From Ophelia neglecta (taxonomy: Eukaryota), in the NCBI GenBank assembly GCA_965285935.1, contig OZ260661.1, positions 51,398,001-51,462,000 of the forward strand: a stretch of DNA of 64,000 nt, read 5' to 3'. This document shows positions 2,701 through 64,000 of the stretch, in pieces (the stretch's first letter is position 1; the number at the start of each line of letters is the position of its first letter). Position numbers and translations under genes: made by a program. Under the pieces are notes generated by a model that was not told where the DNA came from, searched no databases, and saw nothing but the letters and a program-made list of their open reading frames with translations.

Positions 2701-3073
2701 ACAGACTGTGAAATGCTGTCTGCAGGTTCAAATATGGCGGCTCGTGTTACTTAGCGAGATTTCATCTCTAGGGAATTCTCTTGTCATGTGACACAACAAA
2801 GTCACATGACATCAACAGCAACAAAATGGACTGGACTACATGTCTCCAGTGTCATCAGACCTTGAAAGAGAAGGTTAAAGGGTGGCGCCGCAAGTCATTT
2901 GCCATACTTTTTCCTGGAAAAAATGGCATTTATTTGTGACACGTGTATAAATAGAACCACAGAGGTCTCCCCTAGTAGGCCTATATGAAGTCACGGAAAT
3001 GCACTGTAGCAAAGACGCGATTTGAACCGCGAGCCGCCATATTTGAACCTGCAGACATCATTTCAAAGTCTGT
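2701..3073. mobile_element. MITE, 373 bp, 44-bp terminal inverted repeats
   Basis: ACAGACTGTGAAATGCTGTCTGCAGGTTCAAATATGGCGGCTCG (2701-2744) is the reverse complement of 3030-3073 with 2 mismatches; non-coding interior. Confidence 0.8.
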
Positions 3074-3917
3074 AAAAAAACATTCAGCTTGTTAGACAAA
3101 CTGTAAGGCGCTAGATTATGTACACATTTAAATGTTAATAATGTGATAAAATAATCTCGGCCTTTTCTCAATGACATGATTCCAAGGTGTCCAGATACGC
3201 TAGTAGGCTATTTCTGTCGAAATCCCCAATGATGCTCGATTTAGTAAAGGCTGAATCTTATTTAATTTTGAGTGGAGCAGTGGCCCAAAATCAATAATCG
3301 GTGTGGTTGGACAACGGTATTGCAATTCTTCAATTAATACGGTTTCCTGATTCAACGAAATAGGCCAATTTTTGTGTGACAAAGTTCTGAAATGTGACTG
3401 TCCCAGGAAAGGCATCCATCGATCGTACAGCCGATGTATTTAGTGTTATCAACACAATCTAGTGCAGTGTTATCAAAATTTACATTCAATTTACTAAAAG
3501 AGCGAATTTTCTGAAAATTAACTGCAAATTTTCATTGTACAACACTTGCTCGTATTAAGAGTAAGATTATTATATTCAAACCATGTGCATTTTCGCCATG
3601 GGTTTGGTATATCTGGCCTCATAATTTTTGTTTCTTACTGCGCTTCCCCTTGTTGGACACACGTGGTTGTTTATGTCCATGACCTTCTTGTGTGATGTCT
3701 TAGCTGTGCCAGGTGGTATCGTCCCCCCCCCCCCCCCCCATTGTCTTTTTCATTATGTTTTGTTCCACTGGAGATGACACAGGCGCCATTTTGCGTCCAG
3801 TTCTAATTGATGCGTGATTATGGTCTTTAATCTTCATTCTAGTCTTTTCTATTCCAATCTGTTAATGCCAACACATGACATCATAAGTGCTGTTCGAAAC
3901 TATTATAGCCACCCTAG

Positions 3918-4330
3918 GGCAGGGAATACTTCCGCTACAGGCTTATTACTTACATTCAGTTTGACCTTGGATATCATTTGACCTCAGTTAACCCGCGCCA
4001 CCATGGCAGGATATTAATACTTACACATAGGGCCTATTACTTACATGAAGTTTGTCCTTGTCAATTGATCTCACCTATACCGCGCCATGACAGTTAATAC
4101 TTACACTAGGCCCTATATTACTTAAAAAAGTAAGTCCTTGGATATCATTTGCCCTGAATAAGACCGCGCCATGATTGACTTCAATTAAACGGCACCGTGG
4201 CAGGGAATAAATACACAATATTCGTTATATTAATTTTGTCCTTGGATATCTTTTGACCTCAATAAAACTGCTCTATGGCAGGAAATATTTACACTATATT
4301 AAATCACTTACAATAAGTTTGTCTTTTGAC
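3918..4330. repeat. Degenerate tandem repeat, ~85-bp unit, 4-5 copies
   Basis: CCGCGCCA recurs at 3993, 4080 and 4164; CCTTGGATATC and (AA)TACTTACA motifs recur with similar spacing. Confidence 0.7.
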
Positions 4331-4407
4331 AAAAAGAGGGGGGGGGGGGCAAATAATGCTTTCAATGCTTTCATCATCATTCACTGCCACGATTTTTTTA
4401 TTTGCAG

Positions 4408-4705
4408 ACAAAGTTGGGTGAATTCCGAATTTCCCGAACAGTGTGGTTTTATCCGCCGATACCAATCATCCCCTTCCACAGCATACGAGACTCACCGGAC
4501 TGTAAAACGCTTGACCCCAAACTAGATCAACAAACTAGCGAAATGAGCAGTCCGTTCCATACCAGGAATTTGTTTTCAAAAGACCCGCGAAAAATCACTC
4601 AAGAAAGAAAACGACTGGCCTGCCATACAGCCTTTCATATAAATGAATCAGGAGAAGAAAAAGGATCCCATGAAATTGTGACTTCACCCATCTCCAGTCC
4701 AACTG
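4408..4705 (+). CDS. Putative internal exon A of an uncharacterised host gene
   Basis: Acceptor TTTTTTTATTTGCAG|, open frame (ORF 4402-4722), weaker donor G|GTATAG ending in phase 1, matching the next exon. Confidence 0.45.
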
Positions 4706-4884
4706 GTATAGGCACGATATAATCCCACTTACTTATTTTCATATATTCAACTTAGTTCACGAAAGATACTAATGTCAAAACAGGTTCAAATGGGTTTTTT
4801 CATGAAAATAGTCGATATCAGATTAATCAAATTCAGATCTACTTATTGCGTTATCTGTAGATATCTTTCTCGATTTTACCACAG

Positions 4885-5445
4885 AATCTTCTTCCGAAAC
4901 AAGCCTTACAACGACCCCGATTGACGAAAGTCACTCGGCGGAGAAGGATGTGATTCAAACCCTGCTAGCTGTTCGGTCGAAACTGATTGAGCTGGAACGA
5001 GTGAGAAATCATGAAATTTACTTAAAACAATGGAACAGACAGTTACTGGATTACGTTGAAAGAAGTCCAGTTTCACCTGACGAGGCGTCCACCTGTTTAG
5101 ATTGGGAGGAAGACACCTTTTACTTGGGAGGGGAGGGAGATAGTCTGAATACCTTAAACGTTACTTCGCCTTTGTTAATACAAGATATTAACATCAAAGA
5201 GAACAAGTTTAAAATTGATGATACACCCGTGTTTGACAAAAGGACATGCAATTCAAGATCAGAGCAATACTCAAGTGACGGGGAAAATACTTCAATTGAA
5301 GCCTTGTCCGAAACTTCATCGAACAATGAATCATTGCCACTCCGCAACGAGGATAATGCAGAAGCCTTTTGGTACGAGAATATTGGTGGAGAAAAGTCAA
5401 TTATTAATCAAAATATGATCAAAGATTACGGTGAAAATGATATCG
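4885..5445 (+). CDS. Putative internal exon B of an uncharacterised host gene (acidic, short coiled coil)
   Basis: Acceptor TTTCTCGATTTTACCACAG|, 561 nt fully open (contains ORF 4950-5453), donor G|GTAAGT; phase 1-1. Confidence 0.6.
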
Positions 5446-5971
5446 GTAAGTAATTTTAAAAAGTATATGTTGATCTATAGGTTTAAAAAAAAATTAACAG
5501 AATGCCAAAAAAAGTAGTGTTTAGGATTTTCGACCGACCCTGTCTCGTTATCCCAGACCCAAAAATATTTATTCATTGGTCAGGAAAAAAATCCTGGCCT
5601 GGCTACAAAGAGTGTGAATAAGAGCTTGATTGTCAGTTGCTTATAAGGCCAACGAAAAAACCGTACATAAGTACCAGACTGTCACATCCAATATAAGTCC
5701 CATTGGTAAATAGTTTGCTAGTTTAGTCAAATGCTATTCATTTCTATAAAATAAATACAACTAATGCTACGCATGTTCAACCATATTTTTCTTATTATTT
5801 GTCGATTTCCTTATCATTTCCTCTGCTTGTCTTATTTTAAATGTTTACGAAACGCTGGTGATGTGATAAGTTTAATGGAGAAGATATGCGGTAAAACAAA
5901 AAACCTCCAACTCAAAAAGCACGATTGATACAATGAAACTGCAGTCACTTACATAGATTCTTATTTTGAAG

Positions 5972-6336
5972 GGCGCCTAAAAATATACTTTACCCCGAAA
6001 GTGCGGTCTGGCTGGTTGGAAAAGCACATGAAATCGTCCAAGAAAATGGTGGAGATGATTAAACGAAGGCTGGCGTCACTGGCGCATCAACAAAAACTTC
6101 TTCCTTCCCGTCCCTTGTTCAAGCGGAAGTGGATAGTGTGTCACAGTGTCCTTGACCCCACTGTGCCGTTTGATCGTAATTTCAACATTGACCTTGAGGA
6201 AGAAAATTCTCCCAAGTCAAAACCAATATACAAGTGTTCACAACTCAGTCAGTTTTCTCCAAACAGAGGCATTTCAGTCGGCAATTCATCAAGAAATAAT
6301 CTAAACGATTTGAGAAAACCTCTGGGTGTGTTACAT
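5972..6336 (+). CDS. Putative internal exon C of an uncharacterised host gene
   Basis: Acceptor TTCTTATTTTGAAG| in phase 1 (compatible with exon B), open frame (ORF 6001-6384), donor CAT|GTAAGT in phase 0. Confidence 0.55.
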
Positions 6337-7049
6337 GTAAGTGATTCCTGGGAAAACGCACCATCAAATCAAACTGTATGTTAATCTATTCCTTACAGTA
6401 ATTGCTTTACGCTGAAATATTAAGATATTGTTGGGGAAATGCAGGGTTAAGTCATTGTATATAGCACCCATTAGAAAGTAACAAATATGTAAACAGATTT
6501 TTGTTCAATTGATTATAAACAAGAGACTCATGTTAAAAAGATAAATATTTAAGCTAACAAAATGTATCGGCCAGTCTTTGTGCCAACATGAACATCACCG
6601 TCGCGTGAGTTCATTGTGTATATAAATTAACAAACTTGAATATAATAATCTGTTTACATAAGGTTAAGTGAATAAGTTATCTAAAATTGTGTAACGTTAT
6701 TAGGATATTGATGGCTCATTATTAAATTATACTCTACCATGTCGATAAGTCATGTTTGACTAGTAATCTTGACAATAAAGTGTTAACATTCCAAGCGATG
6801 TTCTTTGTCCATGGTAAAATGTATATGCCCATATATGGTTTTGTTAGCAAAACAATAATAGAATTTCCAATTCTTGTTCATTTGTCGTTTAAATTTAAAG
6901 CTCTTTTTCTTTAATTCAGTGATAACTCTCTCGTCTTAGGTCCAGATCATGGGGGGGGGGGGGGATAGGCTGACAGGTATTCGAATCATTATTTGTTGAT
7001 TTAAATTGGATATTAATACTCATTATCATCTAGCTATTTCCAGTATTAT

Positions 7050-7710
7050 GAGATATTGCTTGAAATTATGGGTTAATATAACTTAGTTTAAGTTATTATG
7101 CGTTATTGGGAGCTATTTTTGATAAAGGTGGCCTACTATTATGTGAATTATTGTTAGGGTCATACTGAATTTTTGAGATTTATCGTTGTTTATCCTTAGT
7201 TATCGTGAGTTATTGTAGGTTATCGTAAATTATCGTAGGTTATTGTGAGCTATCGTCTTGAGTTATCGATCGTGACTTATTGTTAGGTATCGTGAGTTAT
7301 CGTCAAATATTGTGAGTTATTGTCATTTATTTTATTCTATTGTACATGTACATCATTGCTATAATTTATTGCTACTGTGCCTTATTGTGCAGGGATTGCG
7401 ATTTATTATAAAATAGATCTATTGTGCGTTATTGCAGGTTATATTCGTTAATTGAGTTCAATTGTGGTTAATGGCAAATTATTGCAGGTTATCCTAGTTT
7501 ATCTTAAGTTATTGTGTTTTATCAAGGTTTATTGTGAGTTATCGTAGGTTATCGTGAGTTATCGTGGTTTATTGAGAGTTATCCTGAGTTCATGTTGTTT
7601 ATCGTGCTCAATGCCAGGTTATCGTCATTTATCGTTGATTATCGTTGGTTATCATGGATTATCATCGGTTATTGAATCTTAGATTCGGTTAGAATGAGTT
7701 ATTGTTAGTT
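7050..7710. repeat. Degenerate 10-bp minisatellite (consensus TTATCGTGAG)
   Basis: Dozens of TTAT(C/T)G-nnnn units with 10-nt periodicity, clearest at 7190-7330 and 7500-7680. Confidence 0.85.
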
Positions 7711-8117
7711 AGTGCAATACGATATTTACTTATTACAAATAATTAGAAAGAAGACAAAATTTATCATTTACTTACAGAACAATATTGGACTTTTATCATT
7801 TGTCTTTAAAGTTCATTCTCATAATGATCCCAGTGCCAGTCAGCCTGGTAATCATTTATATTCGTGAATATTTGGTGTTTATCACAATATGAGGCAATTA
7901 TTTACTTTACAATCAACCGGAGACTATTCCATCAAGAGATTGATGGCACCGTTCAAGCGGAGAATTTTACCCCACAGATATTCGAATCATGCAGATATGT
8001 TAAATTCAACGCTTCACTAGTGATAGGAAGAATAATTTAAATTTGCTTTCCTTTTACATTATATGATTAAAATTTTCAATACAGGGAGGATTATACAGGC
8101 ATTGTCCAACATACATA

Positions 8118-8294
8118 AAGTGAAACCTGCCTTAAAGACCACCTCTGTAATCAGACCACCTGCAATTCAGACCACTGAGATGGTGACTATTCTATATGCT
8201 TTCAATGTTAAATGACATGTCTAAACAGACCACCTCCGAAATCAGACCAGTATCTTCCAGTCCCTTTGGTGGTCTTAATTCACAGGTTTCACTG
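8118..8294. mobile_element. Tc1/mariner-pogo (Tigger-like) MITE, 177 bp
   Basis: Termini (C>A)AGTGAAACCTG...CAGGTTTCACTG flanked by TA on both sides (8116-8117, 8295-8296); internal AGACCAC repeats. Confidence 0.8.
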
Positions 8295-8689: not shown

Positions 8690-8800
8690 TAACACAATAC
8701 CTTAAACGTTTTTAAAACAAAAAAACATGTGCAACTATGTCAATGCTTTGCTGAAAACAAGAAACACGCCTAATACCATGTTCCATCATCAATTTAATTA
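8690..8800 (-). mobile_element. Short CR1/L2-group LINE RT fragment
   Basis: Minus strand reads LGVFLVFSKA (cf. GVFLDFSKAFD); nucleotide similarity to 11440-11500. Confidence 0.55.
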
Positions 8801-17431: not shown

Positions 17432-17439
17432 GCACCTCG

Positions 17440-17935
17440 TGGTGGTTCGAGCATCACTTCAGTCCTCGGGTGGCAGGGCCTCATTTCCACCCAATCCGTC
17501 GAATTAGTGGGCAACAGAGTCCCTGTAATTAACAACTTCTAACACCCATCGTCGCCAATAAGAACTCCCATGTATATACCATATCCTGATCCACAGACAA
17601 AGTCACCCCCGTGGACACCATTTCAGGCAATATGTGGCAAAACCGACCGGAAACAATGCCACGTTGGTTCGCATCGACCCAGACGATATCCTGTCGAATA
17701 GCGGAAGGTGCCCTTACCGCACCGTAAGCAACAAGTAGGCCTACCCGAATTTGTACTCCCCGTACCTGCCAGGATACAAAAGATCTGCAGGTCCTCTTTA
17801 CCCACAAGAACATGTGTCCGTTTCTGGCGACGCAGAGGAAAGGACGCGAACCACAATACCTAAGGGGCAATTTGGATCTGTTGCAAGTGAAGTGTGGTGA
17901 GCTGAGGAAGACGGGTCTCCATGGAGATAGAGCTC
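17440..17935 (+). mobile_element. Gypsy LTR-retrotransposon pol fragment (region leading into RT)
   Basis: VRIDPDDIL...LPGYKRSAGP...NMCPFLATQRKGREPQYLRGNLDLLQVKCGEL matches the invertebrate Gypsy pattern DPDNIL...PGYNGAAGP...NMGPVxPPQRKGRVPQYSRDKLxELQxKFDEL (recalled). Confidence 0.75.
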
Positions 17936-18004
17936 TGCCTTTGTTCATCAAAACTGTCCTGTACGTGTTGTTAAACACTATACCAATCTCTAATAGTATC
18001 GCTT

Positions 18005-18814: not shown

Positions 18815-19260
18815 AGCGCTAACAGGGAAGCACCGATGATAATCTCATGTGGGAGGAGCATCATTCGGCTCGGTTAAGCCACAAAAAGAGCCAACGAATA
18901 CTCCTTCATGCAAGCCAGGGGACCTTATATTTCTGCACTCGGATGGGTCAAAGGTCAAAGGACGTGAGGGGAACCTGGTTGTGGGAGGCGACGGCGACTG
19001 GTAGGCCTATAGCCTAACGTCAATAAATTCACCAGCAACCAGTTAAGGTTTCGATCATACAAAGTCCGTGCCCAGGACTATACATCCCTATCCGAATTCC
19101 GGGTCTGGAACCGATCCCAAATGAATTCCGGTCCACAGAGGTTGATCATTTAAGTGACGACCACCATGGACAATACCCCGAACAGGTTCGCGAGCAGGCT
19201 AAACTTCCGGTCGATGAATCGACCCCGGATGAACCAACCGGAACTGATATATCCGATAAA
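18815..19260 (+). mobile_element. Gypsy pol fragment (integrase C-terminal region), same family as 17440-17935
   Basis: PGDLIFLHSDGSKVKGREGNLVVGGDGDW..NVNKFTSNQLRFRSYKVR matches the recalled pattern GDLVYLxSDxxKxxARDRYLVxxxDGxWCNIRKFTGSQLRxxSYRV. Confidence 0.7.
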
Positions 19261-22475: not shown

Positions 22476-25011
22476 GTGGCTGTGCACTCGCGGATATAAT
22501 GCACGGCGACAACAATAGCGTTATGCAACCAAAAGTTTTTAACTATTGGAAAATCGAAATCATCTCTTTTGTCAAAAGGTGTGTACCAACCGAGCGCAGA
22601 CATTGGTCGACAGCCGTGGAGGTTGGGAGAACCATCTGCGGGAATGGGCTGTCTGCCTTGGGTTCGGGCAGAACCAGGTGCGAGAATTGTTTCACATGTT
22701 CCTGACCTATTTGGTGTTAATCCAGCTTATTTCCATATTATTCCACAGCTAAAAGCTTACACCTAGCAGACGCCACTTTAGGTAATTGGCAGTATTATGA
22801 AATAGATGGTTGGAATTTCAAAAGAGAAACACATTTCGGTGTATACGGAAGATTCGTATTTTATCTAGGAACATTTTTGGAAGGTAGTTTCGCTCTATGG
22901 CGGATTTATAAATATGACGTCCGAACTACGGCATATATTTCTTTTATTGCGAACTTCGGGCACGATGCGCATAGATCACTCCGCCAATATTACTATTTCA
23001 TACCAAAGATTATGATTGTGCGTTTAGAATGTAGTCCATTATTTCTAGTAAACTACAGATTGAGTGCCTTTAAGGTCGGGGACAGCCGAGTGAAGCCATT
23101 GACTAACGTCTTTGGGGCCGGGGTGCCCTATACCAGGCTAACATATAAAGCATTGCATTGAAACAAGCGGGAGTTGCTTAAACCACGTTCAAACCAAAAT
23201 CTTTGATGAGGAATCATTAATTAAACCGGTCCGAAGTAAAGGCTACCGGCGAATGAGACAGCTGCCCCTGTCCCTGTCACCAGCAACCCTACCGCTAAGA
23301 TTCATAACACTGGGTCCATTTTTTTCTATGGACATATTCACAGCGCTTGTTGCTGATCAGAGATGTGTATAAAATGTTGATATTGATCAACGGTTACTGT
23401 GAGAAATCGAATTAATTCATATTTATTCAGTAATAGGGAAGGGGTAATTACAGTTTGTGTGTCACTCCCTATTGCAGAAGGTATGAAACTCCACATCTTA
23501 AAAAATATTGTCGTCTGCAGTTGGTTGAACTCTCCGGCCCTTAGACACATAAAGTATATAAATTATCTTCTCCAAATGGTCCAAGGAGCAACGTAGGTTA
23601 TATTCCCTTTGATCCACTGCTCCTCAAATAAAACCAGGCTTCGCTTGCGACCATAAAATGTATTTTCTTGAGATCCCGCTGATTTCAGCTGCAAAATTGT
23701 TTGATAAGGGCAGCAGTTGAAGTGAGGAGCTCCTGATTGGCCGCAACCTTTAAAACTCAAGCATTTTGAAGAATTTAGCCATTGAGAAATCTTCTTATAT
23801 GGGCTCATTGTCGTCAACATCAAATAATTTTGCAGTCAAAATATAATATCGCAGCTAATATTGTGAATTAGTTTCGAAGAAGAAGTAATCACAGCAAAGT
23901 TTGTGCGCGGAAGCATGTGTTCCCTTAGCCAATCACGCATGGGCCTATAGGCCTACTAGTATATGTGGTTATCGTGCGTCACTGTGTCATTCTGGGCAAG
24001 GACAGGCTGAACACACTCTATAAAAAAAAATGTAGGCCTAACATCATGGTTGCGAACTGAAGAGAGCGGCTGCATGTTCTGTGGCTTTAATGGGCTGCTA
24101 AAAGACATTTAAATCTGCTCCAACTGTTGTCATGGTCTAACGTGTTGATGGTCTAGGAAATTTTGGGAAACGCAATGTAATGGTGGGCTGTCACCTTACC
24201 GTATGAGAACACGGTCATTCTAAAATTACCCTGCATAAACTATATTATGCGAGCTTCATATACAACAACTTTGTATCACTATTGATTATACCGACATTGC
24301 ATGGGACGACAGGAATCATGTTCCAAGATATAAATTTATAGCACTATGCCATGCATTGAAATTTGCATACCAGTAGATGTCAGTTACTGACGATTTCGTA
24401 AAGATTGAATGGAAAATACTGCTGAATTATTTCATTTTATCTTCCACGTATATACACTCCAAACTTTAATATATCAGTGTCACGCAGATTACAACTTTGC
24501 TTAATGTTAAATATAAACCACCAATCGTTTATACTTCAATATTATTTTCAAGTAGCTAATAGACTTTCAACACTAGCTTTAGTTGCGAACCATGTTTAAA
24601 CACTAAAGAGGGTCACTGGGGTAAGGACTTGTCCTGAACAAAGTAGAATACGTTTGTCTAGAAAAGATGGCTTTCCCAAATGACCCTCCTTGATAAGGAA
24701 TATACGCTGATTCACAGCATTACCGATCTATAAACGAGATCAAATTCCATGTTTACAATAATATATTGCACACCATTGTCTTTCGATAGCACATATGTCC
24801 TCTATCGTCTGTCAACTATGATGTTGTTATTCAAAGTAAACAACAGGAAAAAAATCGTTGTGTCGCGAATGTTTACCCGTATCTCTGGACTCTCGGCTCA
24901 TAGGCCGGGCATGAGAAACTATCTCAATCATGGTTTCAACCCATTCAGCAGAAGGGACTATCGGTGAACACCTTGAACTGCATAGAATTAGTAACCATAA
25001 GCCATTGTAGG

Positions 25012-27403: not shown

Positions 27404-30400
27404 ACGAACATAAAGTTGGCTGCCAGTTGCCAGTTGCCAATTTATTTTTATTCATTAAACGTGAAGCTGGCTGCCAGTTGCCAGTTGCCAGTTGCCAGTT
27501 GCCAATTCAACTTTTTACGCAAAAATGAAACTACAATAGGAAAAAGGTGATCATGAAACAAATAAACAATCTCCTTTATTATATTTTATGTTTTCATGTA
27601 TTTATTTCAATGTATTTATGTTTCTTTTTAAAGCAGAGACCTGAATTTGGAACTGAGAAATCGAACTGGCAGCTGGGTATGCCACGACTCGCTTAAGCGT
27701 ATAATCATCATATAATCACACAAAACAGTCTTAAAATCAATTTTTCTATCAATCGGTATCATTTTTTATGAGTATACTACTTTGACCTATGTCAAACAGC
27801 TGAAAGAGTGAAACACAGGAAGTAGGGTTTTAAACACATAAAACTATATTTATTTCATTTGAAAACAATCCCAACATCATCTTTAGGTCTTCATTCATGA
27901 ATCTAGAAAATTTCAACGCACAACATTACTTAGTTATATAGCGGAAGCAAGCGGAAACCCGAAATGGCAGCTGAGATATCGAACTGGCAGCTTGGTCTGC
28001 CACGACTCGCTTAAGCGTATAATCATCATATAATCACACAAAACAGTCTTAAAAGCAATTTTTCTATCAATCGGTATCATTTTTTATGAGTATACTACTT
28101 CGACCTATGTCAAACAGCCGAAAGGTTGAAACACAGGAAGTAGGGTTTTAAACACATAAAACTATATTTATTTCATTTGAAAACAACTCCAACAGCATAG
28201 GTCTTCATTCATGAATATGAAGAATTTCAACGCACAACATTACTTAGTTATAGCGAAAGCAAGCGAAAACTCGAATTGGCAGCTGAGATTTCGAACTGGC
28301 AGCTGTGTCTGCCACGACTCGCTTAAACATATAATCATCATATTATCGCATAAAACTGTCTTAAAATCAATTTTTCTATCAATCGGTATAATTTTTTATG
28401 AGCATACTACTTTGACCTATGTCAAACAGCCGAAAGAGTGAAACACAGAAAGTAGGGTTTTAAACACATAAAACTGTATTTATTTCATTTGAAAACAATC
28501 CCAACATCATCTTTAGGTCTTCATTCATGAATCTTAAAATCTTAAGGTAGTTGCAAGAATTGCGACCGGTAGCTCGTGCCGAGTGATTTTGCCAAAGCGG
28601 CGAAATTTTCAGTAAAAGTTGAAATTTCAAATTTTGCACTTTGCGCATGTGCATAGGATTTTTGGCGACCAAACGAAAGTCGGGTCCAAAAGATTCAGTT
28701 TAAAAAATTCAAGTCTCTAACTCTTTTATTAAACGAGATACGGGCCGCGAGATTTGAAACGAGGTTTTGGCCATATCTCGGAAAATAAGGTTCAAAGCGC
28801 CAAACAGACGAAACCAAACTACGTCTAAAGCGTTTTTTTTTTCTTTTTTGTACCTGACAGAATGGCACCTGCCATTTTCCTGTGCGACGCCATGGCGCCT
28901 ACCGGACCCTCAAAAACACATTTTCCCACACACACTGTGTGAAAATCTGAAGGTGAACGGGCAGGAATTGCGACATGTAGCCAAAGTCAAAATTTCAAAT
29001 TTCAAATGTCACAGTGTTGACTTGTTGATAAACAGGACATATTCCCATTCACATTCAGGACTTGGAGTATTTTACCAAACTTACACTATATTTGAGGAAG
29101 CTTTGGACTCTGAGAAACTGCAAATACGCCCCGAATAATGCGGTATGATAGATATTATTTATATTTTCATCTGTCACTCGTATTGTTTTGTGTGTAACAC
29201 TTCACTGAAGGATATGAATGTGTCATGATATGGACGTGTGCTGTATGATACATGGTAAGTTAACATGATTTTTCTTATCTATCTGACAACACCTATCTTC
29301 ATAGACCCTTTGATCTATGGGACTACCTGGTTTCGACTCTCTCGATTGCTTGATATGTTTTCGCCAAAGCGGCGAAACTTCAAATTTTGCAATTTGCGCA
29401 TGCGCATAGGATTTTTGGCGACCAAACGAAAGAAGGGTCCAAAAGAATCAGTTTAAAACAAAATTCAAGTCTCTAACGCTATTCTTAAGCGAGATACATC
29501 GCGATTTGACGCATACCGGACCCTCAAAAACGCATTTTCCCAGATAACTCGCGACTTCCGGTAGGTACAATCACCAAAAACCACTTATGTGGAAATCGAC
29601 CACACACATTTTGTGAAAATCTTAAGGTGATCGGGCAAGAATTGAGACCTGTAGCTCGTGCCGAATGATTTTCAAAGGCAAAATCGTACGTGAGCACGTA
29701 AATACGGGCACGTCAACATACATACATTATTTAAGCCTACCACAAATGAAAAAAAGGTGGTTTTAAACTGATTCTTTTGGACCCTTCTTTCGTTTGGTCG
29801 CCAAAAATCCTATGCGCATGCGCAAATTGCAAATTTTGAAATTTTGACTTTCACTGATAATTGGGCCGCTTTGGCAAAAACATATCAAGCAATCGAGAGA
29901 GTAGAAACCAGGTGGTCCCATAGATCAAAAGGTCCATAAAGAGAGGTGTTGTAAGATATAAGATAAGATGTGAATATTTATTTCATTTGAAAACAAACCC
30001 AACATCATCTTTAGGCCTTCATTCATGAATCTAAAAATCTTTTGGACCCTTCTTTCGTTTGGTCGCCAAAAATCCTATGCGCATGCGCAAAGTCAAAATG
30101 TGAAATTTTGACTTTCACTGATAATTGGGCCGCTTTGGCAAAAACATATCAAGCAATCGAGAGAGTAGAAACCAGGTGGTCCCATAGATCAAAGGGTACA
30201 TAAAGATAGGTGTTAAAAGATAGATAAGATAAATCATGTTAACTTACCATGTATCACACAGCACACGTCCATATCATGACACATCCATATCCTTCATTGA
30301 AGTGTTACACACGAAACAATACGAGTGACAGATGAAAATATAAATAACATCTATCATACCGCATTATTCGGGGCGTATTTGCAGTTTCTCAAAGTCCAAA

Positions 30401-30950
30401 GCTTCCTCAAATATAGTGTAAGTTTGCTAAAATACTCCAAGTCCTGAATGTGAATGGGAATATGTCCTGTTTAGAAAAGATTGCTTTTAAGACTGTTTTG
30501 TGTGATTATATGATGATTATATGTTTAAGCGAGTCGTGTCAGACCCAGCTGCCAGTTCGAAATCTCAGCTGCCAATTCGGCTTTCAGCTTGCTTCCGCTA
30601 TAACTAAGTAATGTTGTGCGTTGAAATTCTTCATTGATTTTAAGACTGTTTTGTGTGATTATATGATGATTATATGCCTAAGCAAGTCGTGGCATACCCA
30701 GCTCCCAATTCAGGTCTCTGCTTTAAAAAGAAACATAAATACATTGAAATAAATACATGAAAACATAAAATATAATAAAGGAGATTATTTATTTGTTTCA
30801 TGATCACCTTTTTGCTATTGTAGTTTCATTTTTGCGTAAAAAGTTGAATTGGCAACTGGCAACTGGCAACTGGCAGCCAGCTTCACGTTTAATGAATAAA
30901 AATGAATTGGCAACTGGCAACTGGCAACTGGCAGCCAACTTTATGTTCGT
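27404..30950. mobile_element. Foldback-type non-autonomous DNA transposon, 3547 bp (Mutator/FB-like)
   Basis: Termini ACGAACATAAAGTTGGC...GCCAACTTTATGTTCGT; TIRs >300 bp containing (GCCAGTT)n; direct repeat CGCGTTTGG at 27395-27403 and 30951-30959; internal ~315-bp tandem units and nested inverted blocks. Confidence 0.92.
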
Positions 30951-32830: not shown

Positions 32831-35800
32831 TATTTGTCAGTTATGATGATATATGTTGCATTTATTTTAATTGTCTACTATGCGGCGACACCGGGTCACC
32901 GATGCCAGTTAACTAGAAAAATATTGAATCTACCTGGCAACTGACCGAATAGGCCCTAGTATTTTTGTAGGATTTAAATCCAGTCCTCTACTGGATATTA
33001 TATATTCCTTTACTCTGTACAGATCGTCTAATAGTCGCTGAATAAATATATGTACTCGAACCCGGTATTTTCTTTATATTTTGACCCATCAAACATGTCA
33101 ACCCAAATACCACAATGGGCTTAGACAGTGTTGAATGTATAGGCCTATTTTATCCTTCATAGGCTAATCATAAACTGCTAATCATGATTGTACACGAGGG
33201 TCGTAATCATAACACATTAATAGGCCTACTTATTTCTCAGTCAAAGATGACAAATTTCCTATCGAAAACAATGGTAGGCAATATATTATTATTACCAAGG
33301 AAATGACATCATTAGAGTGATAGGCCTTGTACTACGAGTTTAATAGTAGATTATATAGAAATGGTTTGGCGCTCAGTGAACGTATCCTACTGAACACATT
33401 AGTTGAGAGAAGAAGAATTACGGACGCTTGCCGTTACTAAGGGCTATTTTTTTTATCCAATATTAAAGGAAATTACAGAACAAGTCCTGAGATCCTTATA
33501 GCCATTCATTCCGAAAAAAATCAAATAAACTAGTTCTTAAGGCACAATAATAGTCACGTGTTAGCAGTTAACAGCCCCTGTTCCTGTTCAAAGGTGATCA
33601 ATGACATTTAGAAGAACATTAACCCTCTCCTTACTGCGGCGGTAGCAAAGTTTGAACCCACATTGTGAAAACCCCGCTCCTCCTATATATTAGTACAGTA
33701 AAAATTTTGTGATCCTCCCTGGTTTGGAGGTCACCCTTTTATGACCCTCTTTCCGCGGAGTAATGTAAGCGTACAAAGAATTCCATGATGCATGATATCT
33801 ACGCTGGGAGAAACAAAGTGAGACAATCCTCCTCTTAAATTTGCCCCCCCCCCCCCCCGGATGTTAATTATGGACATTCTCTACACTCATAAAAGCCACC
33901 TTTCTTAAAACTGGTTGCGGTTTGATGAATTTCAGCAATGTAAAAGGTCTCTGTTCCCACACAACATGAAATGCCGAGGTACCACGTGTGAGCTACACTG
34001 CAAAGTGTCAACCTGCTTTACTACCTCGTCGCCAACAACGTCAGTATAAGGCCTATGTCCAAAACAGCGCGTTGGTTGCCTACCTTTGCCTGATGCTCGG
34101 CTGATATTTGGTTCACCGCTTTTTTGGGTGATAAATTCCAATCAAATCGACGCCTGAGGTTTGATCATTTAGACTTTATTTTGCAGTCACGCTAATAAGT
34201 CCAGACAATGCGATGTAGCCAACATGCTATGAGAGTTATTGGGAGGAGAATCATTTAATACTAACGCTGCACAAAATTTCTTCTCATTATCAATCATTTT
34301 CTTCGGGCTTGGACAAACAATATGTTTTGTGGCAAACCCACACGTGTATTCTTCATTGTCTGACATACATTTGAAAGAACTGACTAAAACAGGTTGGTTA
34401 TTTGTATTGTGAAGGTTGCTATAGGCCAATGGTATTCTATAGGATCTTTTTCATTGTTCGGAATATAATTACTGCCGAACACCCAAGGGTCCCTAAAATG
34501 GGAAAAGTTCCTGTTATATTCGGAGTCCTAACTATCCGAATTGTCTTAAACCCCAGGCTGCCTTTTTGTTCTAGAAATTCTTAGTTTTATCTTATTATTA
34601 GTATCTTAAAGAATCTATGTCGAAGGGCTTCCAGCAGGCATCTGGTTTTAATACTGGTCATAATTGCTGAGTGTTTTTCACGCTTTATAAACTTTTTACC
34701 CATTGTTACATTTGAGGGCATATTATGTTATGCCTAAAATTTTATACACTGTTAACATTCATTGTCATCCGAGATCATTACGATGTCTACAAATTTATGC
34801 TAGACAAGTTAAATATTGTTGGCACATTGATAACAAGTCCACCGATTAAGGCAGGCCACGAATATATGCAAGCGCAGCACGTATTCATGTAAAAGACAAA
34901 ATAACCATCTCGATAACGTTTGTGTCTCATAAATGCAACTGTCTCGCAGTAAAAGAAATCACCATGAATAATGTATGTTTCTTGTAGGAGCCAATTTTCT
35001 CGTGCAAGATGACGCAAAAAGGGCATGTTCAATTTTCCTTGCAACAAGTGCCAACACAACAAAACCTCTGTGATATATAAACATATCAGGGAGCCCTCAC
35101 TTCGACTATATGTTATATTATATCGCTCAAATTCAATCTTGAGCTGATAACCATTGAAAGCGAATGTAACTGTAAAAATGATTATTCGACATGTCGCCAG
35201 GAAGTTCAATTGATTATCATGACAAGAGTTTAAAACGTAATCGAAACGCCTATTTAGACAATGGTTTAAATATGCTCTGAAAATATTCTGATAAACCTGC
35301 ACTTGAGCGAAGCCCAACTCGAATGTGTTAAGTCTTAACGGGAGTAAGTTATTTAGTATACAAGGTTTCAGTTGGTCTGCCGAGTATCCATTCCCTTGTT
35401 CAGTGAAGTTTGGAAGTCACGTAGTGCAAAACATGATTTATACCTATAGTTACACATGCCATATACATCTTGTCATCTCATGAAAAACTGTTGGGAAATG
35501 ATATTACTGTAAATGAGTTTTGTCTTTTGAATTTAAAGGCACATCTGCTCAAATGGCATGGGCGAGTGGTTCACCGGTCGAAAAGGTTATCTTGCTATCG
35601 GTTACATTGTCATTGATGAGGCTTTTGAAATATGGATGTAACCTGATCAAGCCTCGAAGATGTCAGATCAAAAGTTTATGATGCCCTTTTAATGACCAAG
35701 CTTATTAGAAGATAGGTCTTAGCAAATCAAATACGACCACGGTTTTATTTATGAGGAGACTACGTGCCAAGATTGATTAGCTGAATATAACTTGAGCGAG

Positions 35801-46510: not shown

Positions 46511-46514
46511 TCAT

Positions 46515-49202
46515 GTTTAGTTTAGTTTATTGCTTAAATAGTACAATTTGTAGCGTACATAGTAAAATAATAATGATGATAGGGTAAAAAGAAAAAAGAA
46601 AAAGAGATTTGCATTTATCACATAATATTTGTAATACATATAGAGCACGAAAAACTACCTGAATTTATAGAAGTTTGGTGTGAAGCTCGAACGCCTTACG
46701 GATAAACACAGCTACATTATTCAATATCTTAATGCTTCCCTCGTTAAATATCTTGATGAATACACTCTCTGGGCCACCTCCAAACTCGCAACAAGATAAA
46801 TAATGTGCCCGTAGACTGCTGTATAGTGGACACACTAAAAGAAAATGAATTTCATCCTCAATTTGTCTACATACAAAACAAAATCTGTGCTCCGAGGGTA
46901 TTTTGGGCCTTGACCACGTCCCTGTTTCAATAGAGAGGTGATGATTTCTCAGGAGGAACCTGGTTATTGTTAACTCATTAGTGACACTCAGCCCGACAGA
47001 TCTGTAATGTGGAACTAAATCAATATCGATATTAATACAGAGTTTACTGTAAACCTCACATTTTCTACTGCTAACAATGTTTTCGTGGATTTTGGTTCTG
47101 CCTAAATAGAAGAATCGTTTCTTAAACTGAGATAGAAATTGTTTTATGTTGCCAGGGCCATTACTCTCCCACACAAAACCAAAACCAGTGTTGTACAGCA
47201 AATATTTCACTTTTTGGTTCCATTCAGTCTGAAGGTTATTTTGATGAGAAATGATTAAGACCTTGGAGTCAAGTGTACCCTTATCACCAGTAATTAAACG
47301 GCACCAATATTTTATAATTCTACAATATCTGACATATTGCAAAGGCAGTCTACAACATTCTCTATACACCATGTCAGTCATTGTGGAGCGTTTGACCTTC
47401 AATATAGATTTTAAAAATTTTAAGTGAAATTTTTCCATAATTGGACAGTTGGCAAAACCCCAGACCTCACAGCCATAGTGGAGAATACTGGCTATTAAAA
47501 CATCAAAGATATGACACATTGCCGCTGCTCTAAGTTTAAACTGAAACGTGTATTTTTGCATACAAAATAATGCCTTTTGTGCCTTATTTACCAAGAATTC
47601 CTCTTGTTTTGACCATCGACCAATACTTTGCAAGTAGGCCTATACACCCAGGTAGCAAAACTCAGTTACAACTTTAATTCTAAAATTATTATAAGTGAAG
47701 ACAGGAGGACTGATATATTTACGCCAACCAAAAATTACAATTTCCGTTTTGTCAGTGTTAAGGTACAATTTCCATTTTTCACAATACTGATATAAACAGT
47801 CGAGACCGTTTTGCAGACCCTGTGAGGTTTCACTGATTATTGCGGCATCATCGGCAAACAGGAGTATATACAATCTCAAATAGCCCAACGAGATTCCTGG
47901 TTTATCAGGTTTATCTATCTTACACAATTCAGACTCTAGATCATTTATGTAGAAACAAAACAAAAGGGGGGAAAGACTTTCCCCCTGCCTAACCCCTAAT
48001 ATACATTCAAACTCAGATGACAATTTACCATATTTTCCCTTTACTTGTGTTTTTATATTATTATACATGCTTTCCAACAACTTGAACAATTTACCCCTCA
48101 CACCCATTCTCAGTATTTTGTACCAGAGGTTGGACCTATTAATAAGGTCAAAGGCTTTCTTAAAGTCGATAAATGCTGTATATAGTTTCTGATTTTGACT
48201 TTTACAACGAGAAATCAAAGTGTTAAATATAAAAATATTGTCTACAGTGCTATGATCTGAACGAAAACCTGCTTGACCTTCTATGTAGAGCTGGTTTTCT
48301 TCCGCCCATTTACTCAATCTCTCATTCAGAATTTTCGTGAACAATTTTGAAATACAACTTAGTAATGAAATGCCCTTGTAATTGTTAGGGTCTGTAGCAC
48401 TTCCTTTCTTGAATATAGGCAAAAGGTGACTAGTTTTCCATGACTCTGGATATACACCGGTTTCAAATATGTCATTAAACAATTTCAATAGGGGTACACG
48501 GATTTCATTACAATACTTGATCTGTTCATTTATTATACCATCAGGGCCAGGAGATTTTTCTGTCTTTAGCTTTTGAATACATTTATCAAGTTCCTCGAGC
48601 GATATTTCTTTATCCAGGTCCAGAAACACTGGGTCACTTTGAACATGTTCAGACATAAAGGTTTCTACGTCAACACTTATTTCATACAGTTTTTGGTCAT
48701 TAGGTTGGTGAAGTTTCTTAAAATGATCATAAAATGAGTTCAACTCCACATTAGGACAGTCCATTGTTTTAACACACTTCAACATGTCCCAGTATTTTCT
48801 AGTATCCCTAGTTCTTAACTTTAGTAATTTTTCAGTTTTACCAAGAGTATGTTCTTGTTTACATAGTTTCGAATGTTTATGATAACTTTTCCTAGAGTTT
48901 AACAATGCTTTACGCATCGCTGGTGTCTTATACAAATCATTGTAAAAATACATATCAGATATTTCAATAAAATGGGACCTTAAAAACTTACATTCATTAC
49001 ACATCCACTCTGGCAAGTGGATTTCCTTACTGCTTTTGTCTACTTTGCTTACAGTTAAGTGCTTTTTACCCACCGAATAAAGTATATCACCAAACATCTG
49101 AGCTTTAACATGTACATCCACATCAGCATTTACACATTGAAAATCCTTAAAAAGGATAGGGCAAATTAAAATACAGCGTTCGCCTATCCAGTAATCTTTC
49201 AA
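46515..49202 (-). mobile_element. 5'-truncated non-LTR retrotransposon ORF2 (RT plus C-terminal Zn-finger-like motif), RTE-X-like
   Basis: ORFs 47640-49202 and 46665-47633 are in one frame split by a single TAG. Motifs KSPGPDGI, NYKGISLLS, QAGFR, FIDFKKAFD, GVRQGESLSPLLF, LLFADD, YLGV, YGCEVWG, CFVC..EDEIHFLLVCPLY; 3' end AATAAACTAAACTAAAC at 46515-46531; no endonuclease domain. Confidence 0.95.
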
Positions 49203-58115: not shown

Positions 58116-61100
58116 CCCAACTTTATTTCTGATATTAGCACGAATTTTGCCTTACATATATCCTGGGATTATCTTGAAATTTTATGTCTAGCCACGGTAG
58201 GAGAAAAAAAATATCCTCTGTTTCTTTGCCCTGCCGCTTGGGTGTCTATTATTGTTAACAGTATTCATGGTATATATCAATGTTTTGTCCGGAATAATAG
58301 TACATCCTGTGCGTCATCTGGCATGGGGTCTGTGTCTTGGGGCGTAGGATCGGGATGAGTGCCCGAGTTTGGGGTGTCTTGGGCCAAGCTGCATGACGTC
58401 GGGAATGTCCCTAGCGTCTAGATGGTATTTGTCGTCAGAATCTGTGTCGCCTATCGGTCTGTCTTCCCTGCTTGAGCCTGTTACTGTAGGTGGTGGTTTT
58501 TTATATTTTTGTCTTTGATATTTTGCTTGAAAGTTTTCGGCTCTCATGGGGATAGGAAGTACGATATAGGAGATTAATTAGGAAATTGTCATAGGCATTG
58601 GAAAGTATTCAACAAATAGGAGACAATACCAAAGAAAGAATGACAGATGAACAATATAAAGGTTTAAAAGTAATTTATCTTAAAGTAATGCTTTCAAGCC
58701 ATATAAGATAAAGCCAAGCGGAGGCAGAAGGACCCCAAATCGTGTCATATGTGTTTTAGCAATTTGCATGAACAAAGGAAAGCCGGTAAGATGCATAATT
58801 GGTGATATATACGTGGCTAATTTCGGCACTGTGTGACACAATCAGACTGTCACAAAATTATAAGGTTACCAGATAATTACACATCTTGGATAATAAAAGG
58901 TGATATAAGAAAAAGCTAGGCCTAGATGTCATTTTTCCCTTTTAGGCATATCATCATAACGCGGGTATGATAACACAGGAACGGGAGTGGATACTTGGCT
59001 GAAAAACCACGTCCCGCCTTGAAGAATAATGCACTCTCTCGGCCACATTTATACTGAATAGAAACATCAAACACCAGCTCCATAGCTATTAACTATGTTA
59101 GAAAATACGAAAAGAATATATCAATGGCCAGGTGTGAACACTACCTTTACATAACACGCAGAACCATAGTCAGGACACTCCAGTGGAATGAGTGATCAAA
59201 TGGCTTCCCCTTTTGCCATTTTGTATGATATTTTCTATCAAAGATGTTTAATTGCAATTTTTTTAATTCTTGGAAATATGAAATGTAAATTTTACTTGCG
59301 GTTCAAGGTTAACGTAATTGCCGTGTATCAAACAAAATCTAAGGATGTCGATTTTTAAAGTAGGCTTCACATTCCTTGAACTATCATACGCCCAATCTAT
59401 GTTGATCATGCGTCGTCGATCTTTAGAGGTAGACATTAAGGGCAATACTTCAATTGTCCGTAGAAAAAGGGCGTACAATATGAATTTGTTTCGAGCTTGT
59501 AAATAAATTAGGAGGATCCAAAACAAGCAAGGTACCTCCGATTCAAGAACCACTTTATTATGATCGTTCAAAGATCGCACGATCACACCCTACTACCCCC
59601 CCCCTACCCCCCCCCCCCCCACCCCCAGATAGGAAATAATAAATAATGAGAAATTGAAATTGAAAATGAGAGAAAATATTTTGTCAACGAGTTTTTAATA
59701 CTTTGATGTAAAAGTACACCCTCGCCTCTCCCCCCCCCCTTTCCTGCCCACCCCCACTACCCCTACGGACATGCCTGGTGTGTAACTGACACTAAATTAG
59801 GTAAATTATTTCTGTCTCCCTTCATCCTAGGCTCATCATTTGTGAAAAAAGCACACCGGGTGTGACTTGGTTCTCTCATCTGCTTAGGATTTCCGCTCAG
59901 CTGACCAGAATTGCACGTGCATCGAGGATGATTCGCACTGGAGGTGTCTCTCGGATGTTGTATAAGCTAGGGCAATACGTGCTTAAACGCATTGGAAACA
60001 TCACGGATATAACCCCCTTACATTAGGCTGAAAGAGGCCAAGAGAATCTGTACGTTATATTATGTTCTCCTACATGTCAGTGCGGAACCGATGTTACAAC
60101 ATATTTAATGAATCAATTTCGAAACTGAATAAATACATGAGCAATGATCAGCCTTTTTTTTAGAAAAATGTCAAAAATGCTCAGCACTATAGATGAAAAA
60201 TGTGTTGGGTCCTATATAGGATTTTATAGATGATAATTTAGGCCTATGGGCCTATTTGAATTTATTTTTACAAACCATGCTGGGTTTTTCATTCTAATGT
60301 GTTAAGCAGGATGATAATTCATTCAAGTTTATGTTATGAACATGGCATCATTTGTATCAAGGCTTATAATTATATTAATAGATGCACTAGAAAAGGAAGT
60401 CGGAAAACAATTAGCATGAAGTATTATTAGACCTTATGGTAAAAAATATTCGGACAAATCAGTTAAGCGACATGATGAAAGAAGCCTTACACCACTCACT
60501 GTTAAATATACAGGAGTGGATAAACGACTGACAAAGAAAAATCAATAGGCCTAGAGTTTGGTATTTAGGTATGTGCCTATTGATATTGTTTTCAATCAAT
60601 CAGAGAGGCTCGAATCCGACCTTATCTTTGATTTTCGCCAACACTAACGTAGGGCTTTTAACCTTTTTTTCCGGGGTAGGACAATTAGCTCATTCACGCC
60701 ATACGAGTTTGCCAAGTCGAATATTGCAAATTGTTTTATTGGAGGCTATATTATTTTCGATGTAAATCTTCTTCTTTTAATTTCAAAGCTGGATACAATC
60801 GATTTGGTAGAATTTAAAAACAAAAAAGAAAGTTGCTGCAGCAGCTTAAAATAATTTGTTCACATAACCTGCGTAGCTTACATTCCTGTACTATTAAGAT
60901 AATGTATATTTTAAACTTAATTAGTTTACAGCGGGTAACCCGAAAACCCCTCGAAGTGCACCAAACCTATATCAATAACGACTTTTGATTAAAATGTCGA
61001 CCCCATAGTCATAACAAAATGTATTTTGAGACGTCCCCTTTCAGATGGACCATTTGATATCACCGGGATGGGCGTGGGGGAGATATTTTTTCTCAAACAA

Positions 61101-61851
61101 ACTATATTTTCCTCCCGCAACGATGAAAAAATAATTATCAACACACATGACAAACAATTTTTTATCAAGAAGCTATAGGCCTATAAACCTTTTTTTTTTC
61201 AAAATTATTATTACTTTTCTGACTGCCTATTCAGAGCCGCTCTCGACCTTCGCTGAAATGACCTTTCACATTTCTTTGATTCTGTGTATGCCTACAATAA
61301 GAAAGAGCTTATATTTTCTGTTCTTGGTGATTATTCTATTCCATTCACTGCCTGCCAATGCCTATAAAACACCAGATAGGCCTATCAAATTACCCGACCC
61401 TCAGCCATAAATTAATGAAGAAAAGGTGTGTGTGTGGGGGGGGGGAGGGGGGGTACTCAGCATAAGGTCCGACGGGATGCTCCGAATGAATGGGGTTTTG
61501 CTTCCGCCTTTTTGCAAAATTACATTGGCTTGTCTTTTCCATCTGATGCTCTGCATGGTCACGTAAAGGGTGTCAAAATTGGCTTTCTAACCCCCTCGAT
61601 GATGCCCCCCCCCCTTCACTTAAAAAAGGGGGGGCATCATATGTCTTGCCCCCCCCCCCCCCACTTTTTAATGATGACCCTCTCACTTTTTGCCCTCTCA
61701 AAATGGTGCACATGCAGCAGTGGTCAGAAGCGCATGTCCTCAGTTGGCTTGACCATAATCATATAGGCCTAGTTTCCTGGTTATTTACAAACCCATTACA
61801 CAGCCAAAAATTGAATTTATTCAATGTTTTTTGGCATGTAAAGATCAATGT

Positions 61852-61960
61852 ACAGAGGCGTAGGAAGCGGGGGGGGGGGGGCTGGGGGGGGGGGGGTAAT
61901 GCCCCCCTCCTAATTGAAAAAGTGTGGGGCATCATATGTTTTGCCCCCCCCCCCCAGCCT
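61852..61960 (+). mobile_element. G/C-tract-rich hAT-like MITE end (related segment at ~61600-61670)
   Basis: CAGAGGCGTAGGAAG-(G)n start; GGGGCATCATATGT(C/T)TTGCCCCCC occurs at ~61631 and ~61927. Confidence 0.45.
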
Positions 61961-62359
61961 CTAAAAGGTGTGTGTGTGTGTGTGAGTAGGGGGGTTGCTC
62001 CGCGTTAATGGGGTACCTTTCGTGTTTGAATTATGGCTGAGGTAAGGGGGGGGGGGGGGGGCTCAGAAAATGTTGACCCCATTCACGTGTGTATTTTCTT
62101 CATCTGCCTTAAATACTGTTTAACACTCTCTAGAATAAATTTGCGTATTCACATTTACGCCCCTACAAGATACTGTACACCTGCCCCCATTTTAGACTCA
62201 AAAGTGATCAGAAGCCATTTGACACTTCTGACTTGCCAAACATAATGTAGATATACATTGTTTGTTAGCCTATATGACTTTCTAACCTACCTTTTGCAGG
62301 CCAATAAAAACCTTTTTTTTCGAAGAAATGTCCTTAAAGATTCAAATTTGTTTGATAAA

Positions 62360-62830
62360 GAATCCGAGCAATGACGCAAGCCCATTTCTCACCCACTTAA
62401 GTTTTCTCGCGCCTACTAGACAGCAGCAACGCTTCAGCTTGTAGGTGACGTGCGTCCCGCTGGTGTGGAGCAGACGACGGTGCCAGTCACCGGTGAAAAT
62501 GCCCGATCCCATTGGTCACTTTGGCGCTAGCGCAACGAGTTCGACGCAGTTATCCACAAATAAGGCACACAGAAGTTAAATAATAATCACTCAGGGAAGC
62601 GACGGCCAGTTTTGTCAGTGAGATTTGATTAGAAAAGGCCGCACAACTGGCCCTTGCTCCCGTCTTATCGTAATGAAGATGTGAGAGATTCTCTTAGTGA
62701 ACTGAAAGCAGACATTTACCATCTCCTTCGACTCACCACAGCCCGCTCTGCAGACTAAAGTCAACGCTCCTTTTGCTTACTTTCTTTCGGACGCCGAAAG
62801 AAATTGCCGCAGAAATTGGACACGCCTTTC
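62360..62830 (+). promoter_or_regulatory. Putative CpG-enriched promoter/5' UTR
   Basis: Locally raised GC and CpG content, TGACG CRE-like half sites (62372, 62446) and an inverted CCAAT (~62511), upstream of a candidate first coding exon. Confidence 0.35.
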
Positions 62831-62986
62831 AAAAGCTGACTCTGCCTCGTTGTGTACAAGGAGAAAGAACTTAAGACGGAAAAGATTAACTTTGTAATGT
62901 GCATCTGAAAATATACAAGTCTCTATTTTTCTTCAAGGAGCTCCTGATCTGCAAATCCATTATCGGTTGGCTAGTACAAAAGCGGA

Positions 62987-63080
62987 ATGAAGGCATCTGA
63001 GCTTGCCTTTTATCTTTCACCGGTCATATTGTTGGGTTTATCATGTCGACTACAACTTACGACGGCATCGACAAATCACG
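62987..63080 (+). CDS. Putative first coding exon encoding a signal peptide (secreted or type I membrane protein; remainder outside or unidentified)
   Basis: GGAATG start; MKASELAFYLSPVILLGLSCRLQLTTASTNH followed by phase-1 donor G|GTAACC, the typical architecture of a signal-peptide exon. Confidence 0.5.
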
Positions 63081-64000
63081 GTAACCATCTCTTCTTTTAA
63101 ATTGATTATCTCTCTCAAAACATGTTTGAGCGCAAGCGGGCGACACTAAAATCCACATATTAAGGTTTAGTACTAAAAATAAGCCTATTTGTCTTTACTG
63201 TATATTCCAGTCTAGTTTTATTTCTGTGCGCGTAAATTGAAATAATGCAAACTGCCTAATACATCTAGTTTCTCACCGTAAACTTTTCTTTGACTGGGGT
63301 CAGTTGATGTCTGCTATACATAGCCGGGGATTGAAAAAAGCGCACTCGACGTGAGCAATTCAATGAATGACACAACGTTGTGACAACTGTAGAAAAGTTA
63401 AATTAATCCTTTTCGCTTATAATATTTTGATGTGTTGGTTTGCATGGACATCCTTTAAGGGCACAAGTTCAAGACCTCTACAGGTGGCCTAATTATTATT
63501 AGGCATATGTTTATTAAATTCCGCTTTCCGAATGCCTATAGGCCTATTTTAGGTATTTTTTTACGTGCTAACTATCTGGAGATCTTTTCTCCTGGTTTTC
63601 AGAGTGTGTTTAAGTTCTGAAATTTTCCATGTGGATTTCTTACTGACAATCTACCATAAGCTGCTCTCCTTTGACCTTTCATATTACCGGCGCGTATGTG
63701 GTATATTGTCTTTCTGCAATACAAACCAAAGCCGAGTTATAACCTTTTAAATTCTTTCCTTGCCTATGCAATACTTGTGAAGTTGTCTTCGTGTCTAACC
63801 CTCTCCGTATCACGTAAAATGGGTATATTTTGTCAAAATAGTGTGTCTTTAAAATAGACACATGGTAAGAAGCAGTGACAAGTTTTAGTTTAGACGACTT
63901 TTTAGCATGTTATAATTTTCTCCCTCACATGCAGCGATGGCCAAACGTACAGAAAAAAATGTGATATAAAACGAATGCATTTGACTTGCCTTCATTCTAG

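Follow-up and report, generated by a model that had tools for sequence, protein, structure and literature searches.

A TA-bounded GGCC palindrome in the genome of Ophelia neglecta: a candidate excision footprint of a Tc1/mariner-type transposon

The stretch of DNA described here, referred to as the window, comprises 64,000 nucleotides from Ophelia neglecta (C1:51,398,001-51,462,000 of the 762-Mb assembly; contig OZ260661.1; GC 35-45%). It contains a copy of an RTE-like non-long-terminal-repeat (non-LTR) retroelement, a short repeat resembling a MITE (miniature inverted-repeat transposable element) and a copy of a 334-bp high-copy repeat, and all three carry the same 8-base palindrome, TAGGCCTA, the GGCC core of which is bounded by TA on both sides. 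The distribution of this octamer and its probable origin as the footprint of an excised transposon are the subject of this study. For brevity, its occurrences are called scars below.

The octamer in the window and in the genome

2976..63546, no strand: span of the TAGGCCTA sites, 21 exact matches, flanks all distinct
2976, 9339, 13484, 17736, 19002, 23948, 24033, 27182, 33140, 33221, 42239: TAGGCCTA starts
47635, 50913, 51253, 58917, 60239, 60546, 61176, 61377, 61764, 63539: remaining TAGGCCTA starts

The first-pass annotation of the window had reported about 21 copies of the octamer, with fewer than one expected from base composition. String search returned exactly 21, at the very coordinates given there, and dinucleotide-preserving shuffles contained 0.71 copies on average and three at most. 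Markov models of high order absorb the motif when it is left in place, and they were rebuilt with the 21 sites masked. Orders 1-5 then predicted 0.65-1.75 sites in the window, and the excess thus survives the higher-order backgrounds against which the annotation had wished to see it checked. Among all 8-mers of the window, TAGGCCTA is the most over-represented word that is not a homopolymer. The 40-base flanks on either side of the 21 sites show no mutual similarity, and the octamer is therefore not carried by a dispersed repeat. It is also present in contigs from three public sequencing runs of one sample, some of which differ by other single-nucleotide polymorphisms (SNPs) or small indels (59.6-63.6 kb of the window), and consequently it is not an assembly artefact.

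The 762-Mb genome as a whole contains 69,501 copies. As the reversed-sequence control contains CpG and gives too low an expectation, the counts of all WWGGCCWW words were used as the baseline instead. These words total 311,920 per strand; TAGGCCTA accounts for 22% of them, compared with an average of 5.2% (approximately 16,200) for each of the other 15, which corresponds to approximately 4.3-fold enrichment and an excess of approximately 53,000 copies. In the window the enrichment is approximately 17-fold. Here the octamer occurs once per 3 kb, compared with once per approximately 11 kb as the genome mean, satellite arrays counted, and once per 9.4 kb across 281 kb of other sampled loci. The window is thus a hot region with a regional excess of 3- to 4-fold, and the earlier estimate of one event per 2-3 kb holds locally but not for the genome as a whole.

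Part of the genomic count is inflated by satellites, in which scars were amplified together with the surrounding sequence. Such copies sit near the start of C1, where satellites with periods of 36 and 40 bp carry one TAGGCCTA each (C1:556,666-558,153 and C1:639,363-664,293). Further along (C1:2.92-4.95 Mb), satellites of 60- to 65-bp period bear the one-base-longer word TAGGGCCTA. Promoter-type words are also enriched throughout the window, far less than the octamer; they include ATGCGCAT (9.5-fold), GCGGAAG, CGATCG and TCGCGA.

Paralogous sites and target context

47635..47642, no strand: scar in a young RTE-like non-LTR retroelement copy; 21 paralogs with a single TA
46513..49138, minus strand: the retroelement copy hosting the 47635 scar, 2.6 kb
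2976..2983, no strand: scar in a short MITE-like repeat copy; eight empty-allele paralogs
2946..3079, no strand: paralog-shared part of the MITE-like repeat around 2976 (query 117-250 of window 2830-3130)
61764..61771, no strand: scar in a copy of the 334-bp high-copy repeat, placed at the second of the two TAs in CATATAG
61602..61950, plus strand: the high-copy repeat copy hosting the 61764 scar; 1,680 candidates, very high depth

Judged by their paralogs, all testable sites of the window (three of three: 2976, 47635 and 61764) are derived, copy-specific insertions of 6 bp that turned TA into TA-GGCC-TA. At each of them the core is flanked by two copies of TA, and the unoccupied paralogs have one.

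The retroelement family hosting the 47635 scar has more than 20 other copies in the genome, mostly 96-98% identical. In the family alignment, which had been proposed as a check, the motif proved specific to the window copy: all 21 RTE-like relatives spanning the position read a single TA and are 6 bases shorter (395 versus 401). The scar adds its 6 bp in frame, and the minus-strand open reading frames (ORFs) 47640-49202, which encodes an RVT_1 domain and lies upstream, and 46665-47633 share one frame and are parted solely by the TAG of the motif. Because the host retroelement copies are approximately 98% identical, this scar is recent.

The paralogs of the MITE-like repeat that span 2976 are mostly 6-7 bases shorter than the window copy. 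The predicted empty allele (a 29-base pattern with up to three mismatches) was found in eight paralogs and not once in the control. A genome search with an exact-anchor gapped pattern for the same site matched only the window itself.

The 334-bp repeat gives the frequency of such events. The plain site corresponding to 61764 was found in 679 copies by matching one 39-mer, and a gapped pattern recovered GGCC between the same anchors in four other copies, all scarred at the same TA. Two of these carry TAGGCCTA, one carries TAGGCCCTA, and in the last TAGGCCTA is extended by one more TA at either end. Four of 679, or approximately 0.6% of the copies, distributed over four or five TAs, amount to approximately 0.1-0.15% per TA, which equals the genome mean (approximately 53,000 excess scars over approximately 57 million TAs, the latter number taken from the TA frequency of the Markov background computation). 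No scar was found in a second interval of the repeat, which contains two TAs in a non-ATAT context. In the window copy an unrelated 7-bp deletion adjoins the scar. The repeat, for which there are at least 1,680 search candidates, is bounded at either end by long stretches of poly-G and poly-C and probably explains the large excess of G8/C8 in the window (125 on both strands).

Usable paralogs were sought without success for 17736, 13484, 27182, 42239, 50913 and 60239-61377. The sites 33140 and 33221 sit just beyond the 3' end of a long interspersed nuclear element, and 51253 lies in a family that is only 74% identical. The motif had earlier been read as an insertion at TA inside three retroelement coding remnants. 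This stands for 47635, which interrupts a reverse-transcriptase ORF; 2976 and 61764 are insertions as well, but in non-coding repeats, and Pfam scans of the ORFs near 17736 and 19002 revealed no retroelement domains.

The sequence context of the target was derived from 47 distinct TAGGCCTA sites and is symmetric by construction. The base preceding TA is A in 49% of cases, compared with 35% in the background, and T in 12%, compared with 31%; in 24% of the 47 contexts another TA lies next to it. Tc1 and Sleeping Beauty prefer AT-rich palindromic targets, and the preference for ATAT/TATA observed here resembles theirs.

Recurrence, variants and age of the scars

19002..19016, no strand: scar followed by the shorter scar-like TAGCCTA (loose control only)
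23941-23955 and 60239-60254: similar doublets, each with GGGCCTA adjoining
32950..32958, no strand: one-base-longer variant (TAGGGCCTA or its complement)
2145, 4028, 4107, 15348: starts of the other one-base-longer variants, 4028 and 4107 in one tandem repeat

If one of the two TAs of an existing scar were struck again, the 14-mer TAGGCCTAGGCCTA would result. This double scar was found at 642 dispersed places in the genome and nowhere in the control. It corresponds to 0.46% of scar TAs and so exceeds the per-TA mean of the genome several-fold, as would be expected if events concentrate in hot regions (in the window, 0.4% of TAs are scarred) or if elements re-insert locally. In the window, six spacings between neighbouring octamers are shorter than 400 bp (p=0.02), and the adjacent doublets at the three places listed above suggest repeated hits at neighbouring TAs. 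Directly before the TA and scar at 23948 ends a moderate-copy repeat of approximately 100 bp (23845-23947, terminating in ...CATGGGCC), in the region of which there are CCAAT- and TATA-like boxes.

Length variants of the scar had been described as frequent, too. The one-base-longer form, TAGGGCCTA or TAGGCCCTA, indeed occurs at five sites of the window versus 0.34 expected, two of them within one tandem repeat, and the shorter TAGGCTA/TAGCCTA at 12 versus 5.4 expected (2.2-fold). The longer form, however, makes up 7.0% of WWGGGCCWW genome-wide, which is near parity. The tandem repeat in question (3940-4326) has a period of approximately 85-90 bp and its units bear the longer variant, which therefore predates the duplication. 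The TAGGCCCTA scar at the same TA of the 334-bp repeat shows that minor variants do occur; in general, the product is very uniform, more so than the first-pass annotation implied.

Octamers differing from TAGGCCTA by a single mismatch are also in excess, approximately 0.6-0.7 times that of the exact word. The mean decay thus amounts to several percent per base, and the scars age neutrally and are not maintained. Some are common to segmental duplicates that are approximately 97-99% identical (sampled loci L044, L046 and L051). The young retroelement family displays one scar, fewer than the genome mean predicts, and the older high-copy repeat carries the mean. Since the young family is under-scarred, the old repeat is at the mean and one scar lies in a copy with approximately 98% identity, the scarring activity was prolonged, mostly older than the young retroelement family and reaching into recent times.

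Origin of the scar

Excision of Tc1/mariner elements leaves flanks with 3' overhangs, and end joining produces two TAs around the first or last 2-4 bases of the element, as in the footprints TACAGTA and TACTGTA of Sleeping Beauty (PMC6943129). With Sleeping Beauty and Tc1 the scar described here would share end bases between two TAs, an origin in end joining after staggered cleavage within the element, and a similar target preference, but their scars add 5 bp with a core of 3 nt, and many non-canonical products arise beside them. To our knowledge, they have never been reported as a word over-represented genome-wide. The Minos scar reportedly keeps four end bases of the element (a finding attributed to Arca et al. 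in 1997). Minos duplicates a TA target, and the 6 bp left by its excision (PMC10992017) equal the net gain, a 4-nt core plus TA, found at 47635 and in the 334-bp repeat. The tips of Minos, however, are not self-complementary and give two alternative scars via a heteroduplex, whereas here one palindromic scar dominates, tens of thousands of copies are fixed in the germline and the donor has not been found. Ciliates remove en masse TA-flanked segments (internal eliminated sequences) derived from Tc1/mariner elements, but that excision is precise and somatic and leaves one TA, whereas here GGCC and a second TA remain and are inherited.

On balance, TAGGCCTA is in our view probably the canonical footprint left when a Tc1/mariner-type element with GGCC tips is excised. 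The analysis establishes the derived 6-bp insertion at TA, its recurrence, its uniformity and its target preference; the transposon origin, the 4-nt stagger and the identity of the tips are inferred. A TA-targeting cut-and-paste transposon with the ends GGCC...GGCC would duplicate its target TA upon insertion. At excision, the transposase would cut within the element, a few bases from its end on the non-transferred strand, and each flank would retain TA together with a short 3' overhang of element sequence. A stagger of 4 nt, like that of Minos, would leave GGCC as the overhang on both sides; being self-complementary, the two would anneal and be ligated without trimming, yielding TA-GGCC-TA each time and lengthening the site by 6 bp. 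A moderate number of highly mobile copies, making repeated and often local hops in the germline, could leave tens of thousands of identical scars, which would afterwards decay as neutral DNA. One scar would dominate because GGCC overhangs pair with themselves and need no processing. The near parity of the longer variant fits such cohesive-end ligation, and local hopping agrees with the mild clustering and with the regional excess of 3- to 4-fold.

Footprints of other elements may be seen in the same genome. An older copy of the 46513-49138 retroelement family (sampled locus L020) carries copy-specific insertions TA-CCG-TA and TA-CACTG-TA, which look like footprints of resident Tc1-like families with CACTG/CAGT ends; together with the presence of these families, they show that footprint formation occurs in this genome.

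Several observations weigh against an excised GGCC-ended element. A scan for inverted ends of the form TA-GG...CC-TA in the window, at 30 loci with Tc1-like transposase (DDE_3) hits and in 345 kb sampled in all returned none; a scan of 345 kb bounds a donor family only at fewer than approximately 6,600 copies, and a mobile element of low copy number would escape it. The Tc1-like families that could be read end in CAGT/CACTG or TGTTACAG, not in GGCC. Since the 47635 scar is younger than a retroelement copy with approximately 98% identity, the donor should still exist. End joining after Tc1/mariner excision usually gives more mixed scars than the ones seen here. Finally, alleles with TA in place of TAGGCCTA were looked for between haplotypes, as the first-pass annotation had advised, and no 6-bp difference was found at 60239, 60546, 61176, 61377 and 63539 in three runs of one sample, which is a weak test (58917 was not bridged). 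The motif is apparently fixed on both haplotypes at these five covered sites. Of the earlier proposal of mass excision footprints, the derived insertion at TA at three of three sites, the TA on both sides, the target context and the 642 double scars thus speak in favour, and the donor is missing. The annotation was right that no intact donor is visible in the window; as for the element with GG(G)...(C)CC ends that it postulated, the TA-x-TA layout agrees, but no such element was found in the 345 kb and the ends are deduced from the scar.

Other elements were considered as sources. PIF/Harbinger and ISL2EU elements of the PHIS superfamily have ends that often start with G or GG; the former duplicate TWA at the target and the latter AT (PMC4482050). 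G-rich ends make them similar to the postulated donor, whereas the duplication at the paralog-resolved sites is plain TA. ISL2EU was rejected on account of its AT duplication, and PIF/Harbinger because the empty and filled alleles at 47635 and 2976 permit only TA. One element of approximately 800 bp, with 29-bp inverted ends starting from GGGCTGTTCC and TAA/TTA target duplications (L044:1872-2677, L046:478-1288 and L051:508-1288), looks like a Harbinger-type MITE with GGGC tips. In the window, an inverted pair of TAGGATTTTTGG at 28.6-30.1 kb was discarded as a donor, as it is internal to a larger inverted repeat; in the surrounding region (28000-30700) long repeats, inverted as well as direct, are nested, the arms reaching 345 nt with 95% complementarity, and GCGCATGCGC-like motifs occur among them. 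A telomere-like origin (TTAGGC) was likewise rejected, the flanks not being TTAGGCCTAA. Among the Tc1-like loci, L028 contains a transposase gene, seemingly with introns (338-1212 and 1342-2028); its family has inverted ends of approximately 128 bp starting with TGTTACAGCCC, and a copy of TAGGCCTA lies in the presumed intron at 1221.

The missing donor would also be accounted for if the hexamer were added at TA by a sequence-specific process that involves no excision of a resident transposon, such as abortive or single-ended integration followed by repair, or a nuclease or ligase placing the palindrome AGGCCT between T and A. The extreme uniformity of the scar and the fact that the 6 bp can equally well be read as AGGCCT inside the TA agree with this. 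Yet the TA-x-TA layout, the ATAT context and the length variant at the same TA are the signature of a Tc1/mariner footprint, the sample searched for the donor is small, and we know of no process that adds a fixed hexamer at TA; we regard such an addition as unlikely. The numerous scars with no visible donor, and a repair as uniform as in enzyme-controlled elimination, might also point to programmed removal, possibly by a domesticated transposase, of TA-bounded elements that survive in the germline only, which would leave scars and no donors in the tissue sequenced. This is hardly credible, as the scars decay like old neutral DNA, the ciliate type of TA-bounded excision is precise and leaves one TA, and scars are found in segmental duplicates of approximately 97% identity (L044, L046 and L051) and amplified in satellites, and must therefore be germline-inherited.

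An exact and strongly over-represented palindrome calls to mind a functional site, for instance one bound by a protein, that is kept or spread by selection. The cyanobacterial HIP1 (GCGATCGC) is such a hyper-abundant octameric palindrome (PMC5861425), similar to the motif described here in length, symmetry and abundance. HIP1, a bacterial word with no known origin, is regarded as being under selection, whereas here the motif arises as a 6-bp insertion at TA, not by point changes, and decays neutrally with one-mismatch products in excess; it lands in transposon copies and unique non-coding DNA alike and even breaks an ORF, so that a selected function is very improbable. As to an artefact (adapter, ligation junction or assembly error) or a part of a dispersed repeat or satellite, the copies in 36- to 40-bp satellites are consistent with the latter, but each of the 21 window sites has flanks of its own, the motif recurs in the contigs of three runs, some with other SNPs, and the differences between TA and scar are clean inside otherwise collinear paralogs. 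This explanation is already largely refuted and retains next to no probability.

If the scars are indeed excision footprints, a bolder and rather doubtful view can be taken: the genome would be a fossil record of approximately 50,000-100,000 excisions preserved as one uniform scar, with self-complementary GGCC tips by which the donor site reseals through ligation alone and a donor that is either of low copy number and extraordinarily mobile or has vanished; more radically, excision would have been carried out by a domesticated transposase under host control. Full-text literature searches with the octamer alone or combined with 'transposon' returned primers and unrelated uses only, and in none of the literature found was a genome-wide over-represented excision scar reported.

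The octamer had also been viewed as a built-in inactivator of ORFs. This is rather a by-product, as one of the three frames reads its TAG as a stop and the majority of sites are in unique DNA that is non-coding. For annotation, however, it should be kept in mind that a third of the hits in coding sequence introduce in-frame TAG stops and two thirds insertions of two codons. Counting excision footprints is ordinarily precluded by their shortness and variety, and genomes therefore give no view of how much cut-and-paste transposition took place in the past; here every event can be counted, because the core is GC and the background AT-rich. The scars would permit the germline landings of a DNA transposon to be mapped in place and time, including hot spots, local hopping and the avoidance of genes, and events to be dated from the decay of the scars and from how old the host repeat is, and they would offer a case of near error-free resealing of the donor site.

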